The position numbers and the translations under genes are program-made. A stretch of DNA of 64,000 nt from Oikopleura dioica (Eukaryota; Animalia; Chordata): positions 7,998,001 through 8,062,000 of the forward strand of contig OU015569.1 of the NCBI GenBank assembly GCA_907165135.1. The letters run 5' to 3'. Positions 29,906 to 33,342 of this stretch are shown piece after piece (within the stretch, counting starts at the first letter, position 1; each line of letters opens with the position of its first letter). A model generated the notes under the pieces. It saw nothing but the letters and a program-made list of their open reading frames with translations. It was not told the DNA's origin and ran no database searches.

Positions 29906-32900
29906 TTGGAAAAAAAATCAAACACATTGCCAATTTTGATGAATTTATTAGAGAAGCTTGACTTTTTCTTTGGTGAATTACTTGATTTTCTCCATGTTGG
30001 CGACGATGATTCGATTTACGATTTATCCAGAAAAGTGCTTCTTCTGCTGCAAGATCAGCAAGCCCACCAACTTCTTCGAAAATACTATAAAGATCAAAAA
30101 CGAACCAGTTCTCTTCGTCGAAGTTTTTCAAGAAAACCAAATACTCTCGAACATTTGAGGAGATGCAAGTATTTGTGGGAGTCTAGTGACTCAACTGGCC
30201 TCTCCGGATTATACGCACGGGATAAACGTATTTGATAGATTTTATAAGACAAATTTATGCTTATCAATGATGGGCTATCAAATTATATGATTCACTTTTT
30301 ATCCTGCTCTTTAGTGTATCAACAGAGCAGACATTGGAAGCTGTAAGAACTTAGCATCGCCGATCACCTTCTTCGTTTTGCTAGAGATCGACACATATTT
30401 CGATTTGTCCCCTACTCTTGTTGTCCAACATGTCGCTCAAATCGGTGCTTTTCACATCCTTTTATCAGGTAAAAAAGGGAAGCAAATATTTTTAATGTCT
30501 GAAAGCGGAGTGGGAAAATTATGCGATCGATTTCACGAAAAAGAACGAGCGTAACGAGTCGATATTCAAGTCATTGTTTTCCTCTGTGTACAATATAGAT
30601 GCAGATCAGTTGAAAATGCTCGAAGAATGTTTTGAGGTGCTTTTAGCTAGATTTGAAAAGTCAACTCCTCACATGGTGTCCTGCATTCTCGAAGGTAATT
30701 GATCAGCCATTCTTGAGCAGTACTATTCTGATAAGAGCCCGACTACAATGGAGAAACTATATTTTATCATTCTTCCCGGGTTTCTGAGAGAATCTCCAAA
30801 ATTTTGCTGAAAAAACGAACTCTCAAATTCAATTTCGTCCGCGAATTTACGACGCCTAGTTTCAAGTTTGGCAATTTGACGAAAAAGATGCTAAGAAGAG
30901 GCATCAGTCCGTTCGTTGTAGATTCGAATGGAATCCGACAATACGAAGAATTCAGAGATAATTTTCAAGGAATTAAGTCAGACTTATTGGGAGCAAATGG
31001 TGTACATTCATTTTACTACTCGTCAGTCGAATCGAAATGTACTTCGTTCTGCAGTTCGTCATGTAAAGATGGTGCTCTAGCATTCGAGTTGCAAGCTGGA
31101 GCCAAGATAAAGGCGAGATTGAGCAGTTATTCGAAATTTCTAACAATCATTCAGGAGACTCCCAGCAACTTAGTCTTTAAAAATTCCGCCTCAATCGTGC
31201 TCAGAGGAACTTGGCATGGAGAACCAGCGGCATTTAAACATATTTTGAAACGGATTGAAATTTTAATTTCTAATCAGTCCCAACTTGGGACTTCCAAGTA
31301 TTAAAATCCGAGTCTCAGAACACAAAAACGGGGCCCAGAAGACTTAGCAGATCAGAAGCTCTACATCAGATCACACTCCGTCAGGAAAATATCCTTCCTG
31401 TCTATGGGTACTACTGGCAGCAAATTAGTGGGCGAAACTATCTGGTTATTGTGAGCAAATTGTGCAGACTTGATTTAGCAGGTTTCTTGGCCAAGTATGA
31501 GTTCAACTTTTGTCTACTACTGAAGTTTCTTCTTCAAGCGTGTAATGGATTAAAAGCAATAGCTCGGGCGAATTTAACTCACGGTTAGGGATGCTGATTC
31601 TTGTTAGCGAAAATATAGAAAAACTGATAAAAATTTAAGGGAATTTCATAGAAATAAATTTTGTAAGTTGGGAGCGCTTTTCATCCCAACAAAAGCGATA
31701 TAAAACCAGAAAACCTTCTAGTCACTTACATTGAAAGAAGCAAAAAGAAGATGAAATGGTTCAGAAGAGGAAACACACAGAAATGTACTGAGGAACCACA
31801 TCTATATATAGCTGACTTCGGACTGGTGAATAAAAAAGGAGGAACGCCTATTTATATGGCTCCAGAAGCTTTTGTGCGACCGGTTCCCGGACTCTCTGAT
31901 GTATACAGCTTGGGTTTGCATTCTTGCAAAAAGTTCTCTGATATATTTCTAGGGATGACGCTTCTATTTGCCGTTTCCGAGCCGAGAGTTATGACGATAC
32001 TACTGTATTACCCCGTCGATCAAAGTTTCGCCTATTCTGCGGACAAATTCGTCGATTCATTCGATGTGCTCAGACTGGTCCGCAGTATGGTCCAGCCTCG
32101 ACCGACAGAAAGGCCCTCAATCGATAAAGTCAAATCGGCGATAAGTAGTTTGCAATGGGGTGGCTTCAAAATAGGTTGGTCGAAGAGATTTACTCTTATC
32201 AGTTCTTGAGAACATGTGTTCGACCAAAGAAAAGCACTTGAAGATTTACAGGCTATTTTCGAAAATCCAGCAGATCTAGATATTCCAGCTTTGGCCGAGT
32301 TAGGTCTAGAAACGGTCTACAATAATATATGCGTTGGACTGACTCCTGCAAAATCGGTGATTCTCAGAAGGCGAAAAACGTACACTTCGATTCCTTGGCT
32401 CGAGAGCAAATTAGTCTCTAACATGCTCCATGATCAAGGGGATTCCTGGAGCTGCTGGGCATTTGCAATCACCTCAAGCGTAAGAGGCTCACTGAGACAG
32501 CTGCTGCAAAAAATAGAGTCTAAAATTGACGAAGAGACCAAGAATTCTTGGGAGCGAATTTTAGATTTCGGGCTACAATAAACATTCTATTCTTAGTAGC
32601 ATTGGTTTCGAAGCATCTTATTTGGAGCCCGAAACTGAGACGATCCTGCTCATCATCGTCAAATGCGCGCTGAGTTAATGATGACTATCATGCCTAGACG
32701 GATAAATAGGGACGGGATGGAACAAACTGCTTTTGTTTTGCCGGTTTTTAAGAGAGTAAGCTTTGTTGAAATAATTTTCGGTAATATTCGTAGATGTGCT
32801 ACCGTTCAATAATACAACAAGAGGGGGTATTTTTGATGGATTCTGTCACCTCACTTTTGGATATGTTGCCCTGGAAAGTGGCGCCAGTGCTTCATTCCTT

Positions 32901-33342
32901 TCATCATCCTTTCCTTACTTCGAAAGAAATGGATTTCTTCAGGTTCGATCGTTTTTATTATTCTAAAAAGCCGTGTTTGCGTAATATTATTAACAAGTTA
33001 ATAGTTTCAATTAACCCGTAAATTATTTATGAACCAGATAATTTATTTAATGCCAGTTCTGGAACGTATTCTGGCAACTTACATGACGCTTTGGAAGAAG
33101 GCTACTTGCTCACATGCGACATTCACAGCGACTCACAGAGTGATAGCGTAAACCATTGTGTTCTACTGGTCGATTACGACGATGAAAGAATGCTCGTTTT
33201 CAAAAACTCGAGCTTAGAAAGACCGATTATAAAAAAGTCAATCGATTCGCGTGCTCACTTCCTTTTGAGCGACGAAACGAAAGTCTCACTGCCAGACCCA
33301 TGTGAAGGCTTCTGCATCGAGTTCGTTTTGTTAGACAAATAA
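29906..33342 (+). CDS. Protein kinase fused to a C-terminal papain-like (clan CA, C1-like) cysteine protease domain; unknown helical N-terminus
   Basis: Kinase: AAFK, SEALHQ, HG-DIKPEN, IADFG, GGTPIYMAPE, SDVYSLG, RPTERPS. Protease: DQGDSWSCWAFA, VNHCVLLVDY, VFKNS. The two are joined in frame by a 36-nt GT-AG intron (32175-32210). Stop at 33342. Confidence 0.85.

Follow-up and report, generated by a model that had tools for sequence, protein, structure and literature searches.

The 64,000-nucleotide stretch of contig OU015569.1 analyzed here (positions 7,998,001 to 8,062,000 of the forward strand; hereinafter the window, to which all coordinates refer) carries on its plus strand, at 29939-33342, a series of short open segments with very small gaps between them. 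These segments were assembled by hand into a single stop-free open reading frame (ORF) of 12 exons running from ATG to TAA. The predicted product consists of 879 amino acids (aa), or 888 aa if the alternative acceptor at 31668 is used, and would combine an N-terminal region, a protein kinase domain, a short linker and a C-terminal domain resembling the C1 (papain-like) cysteine proteases (Table 1). Comparative genomics assigns the kinase and the papain-like domain to one and the same gene. The original prediction for this locus, a kinase-papain fusion, had its beginning at position 29906; the start codon of the assembled frame is the ATG at 29939.

Table 1. Gene model, domains, landmark residues and introns at the locus, with the relatives of the gene (nt, nucleotides)
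Feature	Position	Strand	Remarks
Exons 1-4	29939-30227, 30355-30468, 30506-30694, 30736-31112	+	manual ORF model
Exons 5-8	31155-31252, 31339-31583, 31695 (or 31668)-31913, 31953-32174	+	manual ORF model
Exons 9-12	32235-32570, 32640-32755, 32794-32942, 33057-33342	+	L001 as guide
N-terminal region	29939-31112	+	exons 1-4; about 323 residues; no recognisable family
Protein kinase domain	31155-32174	+	exons 5-8; co-linear Pfam matches on pieces
Lys of AAFK	31236-31238	+
Probable alphaC Glu	31354-31356	+
DIKPEN	31697-31714	+
DFG	31814-31822	+
APE	31859-31867	+	in GTPIYMAPE
Linker	32235-32386	+	about 50 residues; LEDLQAIFENPADLDIP...GLETVYNNI..GLTPAKSVIL; conserved in orthologues
C1-like (papain-like) domain	32387-33339	+	exons 9-12; about 244 residues (636-879); starts IPWLES
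Gln652	32435-32437	+	in QGDSWSCWAFA
Cys658	32453-32455	+	in QGDSWSCWAFA
His818	33154-33156	+	in VNHCVLLVDY
Asn835	33205-33207	+	in FKNS
Intron	30695-30735	+	read through uninterrupted in P0013
Intron	31113-31154	+	42 nt, GC..AG; exactly absent in L014/P0013; stop-containing intron at the equivalent L015/P0014 site
Intron	31253-31338	+	86 nt, GA..AG; between strand beta3 and helix alphaC
Intron, two versions	31584-31694 or 31584-31667	+	GT..AA, giving HGD, or GT..AG, giving VGSAFHPNKS before Asp; between LTHG and DIKPEN
Junction intron	32175-32234	+	60 nt, GT..AG; in-frame TGA at 32204-32206; between kinase and linker/protease
Intron	32571-32639	+	69 nt, GG..AG; after WERILDF; no GT before in-frame stop; GA in L001
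Orthologue group			metagenome contigs L012, L013 (P0012, 99% identity to the window), L001 and L015, L009, L014
Other family members			metagenome contigs L002/L007; L003/L004; L005/L008/L011; L010/P0011

The kinase-protease junction

The two domains had been predicted to be joined in frame through an intron of 36 nt; the in-frame join stands, being carried as an uninterrupted ORF by the orthologous contigs L001 and L009, and the intron length does not. In the DNA alignment, L001 lacks exactly the segment 32175-32234 of the window, the flanks matching codon for codon, and the junction of L009 has an equal length, so that the junction intron comprises 60 nt. The 36-nt version was rejected as the main form because the orthologues lack precisely 60 nt, although its acceptor, which is also in frame, might be an alternative site. 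At the junction, both orthologues read ...GGFRI-T/M-LEDLL... without interruption. In P0001 (from L001, 64% identity), the end of the kinase, ...ERPSLDRIKSAISNLQWGGFRI, runs uninterrupted into TLEDLLELFEEPEGLDIP...HDQGNAWSCWAFA, and in P0008 (from L009), a single frame leads from DIKPAN through GDFG, MAPE and subdomain XI to the Cys motif, with one intron at the site of the 31914-31952 intron of the window and none at the junction. The distant paralogue P0010, encoded by L010, aligns with P0008 in one BLASTP segment (E 2e-12) that begins in the kinase tail and reaches the Cys helix. The uninterrupted join in two orthologues and one distant paralogue indicates that the fusion is real, old and shared. 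The linker that follows the junction is traceable in paralogues as well, with the pieces GLETVYEN and SPIKSPIL recurring in L002 and L003 and the motif [ST]P.KS..L, located immediately ahead of the protease domain, being seen again in paralogues.

Both parts of the protein evolve under constraint. When the window is compared with L001 or L009, the proportion of synonymous differences (pS) is 0.69-0.87, that is, saturated, and that of nonsynonymous differences (pN) is 0.01-0.30, with 0.13-0.30 in the C-terminal lobe (C-lobe) of the kinase and 0.15 against a pS of 0.78 in the protease domain; the introns are unalignable between the window and the orthologues. Saturated pS combined with low pN implies purifying selection on both domains, and, together with the retained Gln, Cys, His and Asn described below, the pattern of conservation is that of a working gene and probably that of a working active site.

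These observations bear directly on the view that the locus consists of two separate genes or a dead gene, in which case the TGA at 32204-32206 would terminate the kinase and what follows would be a pseudogene or a cistron of its own, trans-spliced for instance. The in-frame stop within 32175-32234, the lack of matching RNA reads and the presence of several non-canonical splice sites, one of them with competing models, could all be cited in its favor. Nevertheless, this view appears to be extremely improbable given that the 60 nt are precisely absent from orthologues that read through the junction, that a downstream cistron would have no ATG ahead of the Cys motif, that purifying selection is strong on both sides and a complete ORF assembles, and that 11-12% of the introns in O. 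dioica genomes are non-canonical (PMC8008620).

The kinase and papain-like domains

The assignment of the kinase domain comes from Pfam scans of exon pieces, the matches, on three pieces, being co-linear and each alone falling under the whole-protein cut-off: Pkinase at positions 123-258 (E 6e-7, 29.5 bits) and PK_Tyr_Ser-Thr at positions 49-125 (E 0.004-0.011). The orthologous piece from L009 also matches Pkinase (E 2e-5) and keeps DIKPAN, GDFG and MAPE. The catalytic Lys, DIKPEN, DFG and APE named in the original prediction are all found on the plus strand, as is the subdomain XI motif RPTERPS with its Arg near the domain end. The glycine-rich loop is indeed degenerate, as claimed: instead of GxGxxG, the window encodes FKNSASIV(LRG), and the same glycine-free loop is found in P0013 and L015. 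The HGDIKPEN that had been read as contiguous is, however, split between two exons, HG closing exon 6 (31580-31585) and DIKPEN opening at 31697. To yield HGD, the intron in between must be of the GT..AA or TT..AG type, and the sole in-frame G*-AG option (31584-31667) puts 9 extra residues between His and Asp; at the 31584 donor, L015 has GC instead of GT, followed by the same TAGGGAT, and no contig covers the acceptor. The nearest solved relatives of the kinase piece are RIPK1 and RIPK3, at weak E-values of 0.16-1 (RIPK1 best, 0.16). The strand LRGTWHGEPAAFK resembles the G.WHG..AVK motif of Raf-type (TKL) kinases, a resemblance that we treat as a lead only.

In the C-terminal domain, the papain hallmarks QGDSWSCWAFA, VNHCVLLVDY and FKNS were likewise located on the plus strand as predicted. 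Gln652 and Cys658 are 6 residues apart, with Trp next to the Cys, and His818 and Asn835 are 17 residues apart; the corresponding spacings in papain are 6 (Gln19-Cys25) and 16 (His159-Asn175). The HDQG, the Gln and the Cys-Trp-Ala are invariant in five family members, and L001, L002/L007 and L010 retain the His and Asn at an overall identity of ∼35-75%. When the Cys exon was compared with the PDB using phmmer, 44 weak matches were obtained (E from 0.1), 43 of which are C1A peptidases; these align from the mature N-terminus through Cys25, with the Gln and Cys opposite Gln19 and Cys25 of cathepsins L and K. With the family profile, 29 of 29 PDB matches are C1A, again at weak E-values (about 0.1). 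By language-model features, the N-terminal half of the domain is nearest to PF00112 clusters (0.96, 191 shared), with Peptidase_C1_2 among the weaker neighbors, and the C-terminal half is nearest to the Peptidase_C39_2, Mac-1, C70 and ACTMAP-like papain-like peptidase clusters (0.96, 180 shared), that is, not specifically to C1. The C-terminal half of a paralogue is independently nearest to papain-like peptidase families by the same features.

Because every individual E-value is weak (about 0.1) and no profile or family method reached significance, the resemblance to papain could conceivably be motif-level convergence or chance, the C-terminal region having an unrelated fold. This is, in our estimate, very unlikely: the three motifs are in the correct order and at the correct spacing and coincide with positions conserved in the family, the weak PDB matches come from one family in 43 of 44 and 29 of 29 cases, and the two halves of the domain and the paralogue independently point to papain-like peptidase families by features. 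Frame C at 32820 includes GGIFDGFC, which was rejected as a papain motif because that frame contains a stop in L001. Over 32802-32960, the out-of-frame reading RGGIFDGFCHLTFGY mimics the papain pattern GGIF..C..H..GY by coincidence; the conserved frame reads CYRSIIQQEGVFLM.

The N-terminal region gave no match in Pfam and PDB searches. It is kept in the orthologues, with 74% identity in P0013 and 75% in P0014. A Cys/Ser-rich patch (KCTSFCSSSCKD) lies inside this region. The spliced model shows neither a signal peptide nor a transmembrane segment, the highest 19-residue hydropathy being 1.48, so the encoded protein looks soluble and cytosolic. The predicted absence of a signal peptide and cytosolic location thus agree with a model that has neither a hydrophobic N-terminus nor a transmembrane segment, and the predicted absence of an inhibitory prodomain agrees with the failure of Inhibitor_I29 to match in the Pfam scans of the pieces.

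Introns, relatives and the neighboring gene

The exon ends were compared with the orthologous contigs L001, L009, L014 and L015, with exons 1-2 and their introns lying outside this comparative support. Intron lengths range from 37 to 127 nt. Seven introns (eight with the alternative acceptor) are GT..AG, and four of the 11 are apparently non-canonical: one GC..AG, one GA..AG, one GG..AG and the one that gives HGD only as GT..AA or TT..AG. In Oikopleura dioica, the median intron is 49 bp long and 11-12% of the introns are non-GT/AG (PMC8008620), and the intron style of the present gene fits larvacean genomes. The junctions downstream of the kinase, predicted to be in frame, are so in the stop-free model through exon 12, which includes one GG..AG intron.

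Several of these boundaries are fixed by the orthologues. The intron at 30695-30735 is confirmed by P0013, which reads through this site. The GC..AG intron at 31113-31154 is easily read as coding because it is in frame and stop-free; ORF-based callers translate it, P0012 being an example. For the intron at 31253-31338, DNA conservation among the window, L015 and L014 ends after ACG|GAT in all three and restarts at RLSRSEAL. A GT donor at 31298 was rejected because it shows no conservation in the orthologues. The exon that follows the intron at 32571-32639 (DPAHHRQMRAELMM...) has 97% protein identity in L001 and is contiguous with the Cys exon in the paralogue P0002. Precise differences in the presence of introns are seen among orthologues whose synonymous sites are saturated, with L014 lacking two introns and L001 and L009 lacking the junction intron. 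The presence or absence of introns in orthologues provides proof of intron boundaries that does not depend on RNA and reveals rapid intron turnover. The locus also illustrates how mini-introns that are in frame or non-canonical, in combination with intron differences among lineages, allow gene models to be fixed where RNA is lacking.

When 1.84 billion representatives were searched exhaustively by HMMER with the Cys-motif exon, only five true relatives emerged, all of them short metagenome ORFs; word-based searches added P0008-P0014, and a scan of metagenome contigs added only short contigs. No named or full-length relative was found in any database search, and the window itself contains neither a paralogue of the gene nor a canonical cathepsin. 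From the marine metagenome contigs, five or more members of the family can be distinguished, and the family has been seen so far only in these contigs and in the present tiny-intron genome. Two sequences, P0009 (from L011) and P0005 (from L005), were rejected as continuous ORFs because the callers had read TGA as sense, across eukaryotic introns; in L011, the region from the kinase tail to the Cys motif contains three in-frame TGAs. L010 is intronless over its 1026 bp, a stretch in which every genomic relative carries two introns or more, so L010 may be derived from complementary DNA (cDNA). At 530-545 of L010, where the Cys part gives way to the remaining protease-like domain, the frame slips by one base in an A7 run; this is probably a homopolymer error in a cDNA-derived contig, a real frameshift being the less likely alternative.

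On the minus strand, a neighboring gene extends from about 33457 and is expressed in all four RNA runs compared. Reads of these runs, labeled as the same species, match it from 33399 on with 90-95% identity and diverge completely before 33446, their loose ends sharing one consensus. Such divergence makes it probable that the runs were derived from a lineage other than that of the window.

Possible function and comparison with known systems

The best explanation of these findings, which we favor with modest confidence, is a conserved single gene encoding a cytosolic cysteine hydrolase of the papain fold that is governed by the upstream kinase domain. The C-terminal domain would adopt the papain (clan CA) fold and function as a cytosolic cysteine hydrolase, most likely an endopeptidase catalyzing limited proteolysis, and the kinase directly upstream would be its regulatory or targeting module. 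Control might be exerted through phosphorylation of the protein itself, the linker or the substrate or, in another version, through a change of conformation triggered by nucleotide or by dimerisation, as in IRE1 and RNase L; speculatively, the linker could be a segment that occupies the cleft or is cleaved. A role in stress, immune or cell-death signaling would be a guess. The broader scenario, in which a lineage, probably the larvaceans, expanded a set of cytosolic enzymes with a RIPK-like kinase fold gating a fused papain-type protease, yielding a signaling, immune or cell-death module absent elsewhere in animals, seems rather unlikely as a whole.

A number of results weigh against a kinase-governed hydrolase. 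On the kinase side, the domain has no GxGxxG and depends on a non-canonical splice for its His-x-Asp, and only 11 residues separate the beta3 Lys from the presumed alphaC Glu, given the GA..AG intron at 31253-31338; as far as can be judged from such features, the domain may phosphorylate nothing. The lost glycine loop makes a pseudokinase-type switch a serious rival, under which the domain would not bind ATP or would not catalyze transfer and would act as a scaffold or allosteric switch, leaving the cysteine hydrolase as the sole activity. All three glycines of the loop are missing, in the orthologues as well, the canonical splice option separates the His from the catalytic Asp by 9 residues and the Lys-Glu spacing in the comparative model is short. 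Still, nothing is lost of the Lys, the Asp and Asn of DIKPEN, DFG, GTPIYMAPE or subdomain XI, purifying selection acts on the C-lobe and some active kinases carry degenerate glycine loops, so that, on balance, we consider the pseudokinase interpretation less likely than not.

On the protease side, PF00112 gives no match at E <= 1 on the exon pieces, P0001, P0002, P0005, P0008-P0010 or the C-terminal half of L010, and the half of the domain that contains the His and Asn has no match in sequence and profile searches of the PDB. Structure prediction for the C-terminal half of L010 alone reached a predicted local distance difference test (pLDDT) score of 44, and the model of the N-terminal half (P0002, 12-row alignment) consists of three confident helices for which a Foldseek search of the PDB returned only generic helical matches (E > 1); half-domains are unsuitable for a fold test. 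Searches of the PDB with the C-terminal half of the paralogue and with a three-sequence profile found nothing, no peptidase family was matched by any piece in Pfam and nothing significant was found in PHROGs. To these points is added the RNA comparison, in which no read from the four runs matched the gene at 90% likeness, a result that is uninformative on expression. Thus, of the claim that the C-terminal domain is a C1 protease, the part concerning the Gln/Cys half has good support from sequence comparison, this half being C1A-like in the PDB matches, and its extension to the entire domain is plausible, with PF00112 unmatched and the His/Asn half lacking a structure match. For these reasons, the domain is called here C1-like or C1-derived rather than a demonstrated member of C1.

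The same results leave room for a papain-like domain that is not an endopeptidase but a deubiquitinase or isopeptidase, an amidase, an acyltransferase or a silent binding module. The features of the C-terminal half, which are closer to the C39_2, Mac-1, C70 and ACTMAP-like clusters than to C1, and the lack of a PF00112 match are compatible with this possibility, as is the variety of chemistries in the papain-like superfamily (PMC10318531). We regard it as unlikely because the N-terminal half is specifically C1A-like, with the oxyanion Gln at -6 and Trp after the Cys, and the Gln, Cys, His and Asn are kept wherever the relevant part of a family member is present.

Returning to the kinase-governed hydrolase, kinases and proteases are major post-translational switches that are normally coupled only via complexes such as RIPK/caspase-8, and a conserved, selected, multi-copy single-chain protein that combines a kinase with a papain-like domain would be a simple system for the control of a cysteine protease by a kinase fold. 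To judge from the sequences compared and the literature searched, the architecture is undescribed, lineage-restricted and multi-copy. Given that the papain-like family escapes current profiles, automatic annotation would label such proteins as plain kinases. Should the organism be a larvacean, the family would join the fast-evolving inventions of that lineage.

Among the known systems, the C1A peptidases (cathepsins L and K, papain) are the closest to the C-terminal domain. The correspondence between SIPWLES..HDQGDSWSCWAFA here and SVDWREK..NQGQCGSCWAFS in cathepsin L extends through Gln19 and Cys25-Trp26, the His of NHCVLLVDY and the Asn of FKNS are at a papain-like spacing and the length of ∼244 residues is similar. 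In contrast to C1A, the present family has Trp, Phe or Tyr in place of the Gly before the Cys and Ser, Tyr or Thr in place of the Trp of NSW; the disulphide cysteines of the C1A pattern are missing along with that Gly. Furthermore, the domain comes without a signal peptide or a matched I29, lies behind ∼635 residues that include a kinase and is presumably cytosolic. Bleomycin hydrolase (C1B), a papain-family enzyme of the cytosol, also lacks a signal peptide and a prodomain, but it is a self-compartmentalising hexameric aminopeptidase without a kinase, and no specific sequence match to it was found here.

The pairing of a kinase with a cysteine protease is reminiscent of RIPK1/RIPK3 and caspase-8, all the more so as RIPK1 and RIPK3 are the weak best solved relatives of the kinase piece; however, those are separate vertebrate proteins, the caspase belongs to clan CD and the similarity is too weak for placement in the RIPK family. 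The likeness to IRE1 and RNase L, in which a kinase or pseudokinase precedes a C-terminal KEN ribonuclease, is confined to the layout, with a kinase fold immediately ahead of a hydrolytic effector. In those proteins, the effector is activated when the kinase fold binds nucleotide and dimerises, which offers a possible model for the present protein; their effector is, however, an RNase, and there is no sequence relationship.

In full-text literature searches, neither a kinase-C1 fusion nor the present family was found to have been described. The original remark that no animal kinase-C1 fusion is known to be described therefore holds in this specific form, but the combination of a kinase with a papain-superfamily domain has a precedent in EDR1 (PMC10318531). 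The nearest precedent found comes from plant Raf-like kinases with an EDR1 domain (PF14381): these proteins combine a PF07714 kinase with a domain of the papain-like superfamily that belongs to the C71/C93/transglutaminase-like branch (PMC10318531). As in EDR1/CTR1, a Tyr/Ser-Thr-type kinase and a papain-superfamily domain are present here in one cytosolic protein, whereas EDR1 lacks the C1 signature, PF14381 is unmatched on any piece here and the papain-like domain here is C-terminal. The EDR1 domain sits N-terminal to its kinase. The EDR1 fusion and the fusion described here are probably independent.

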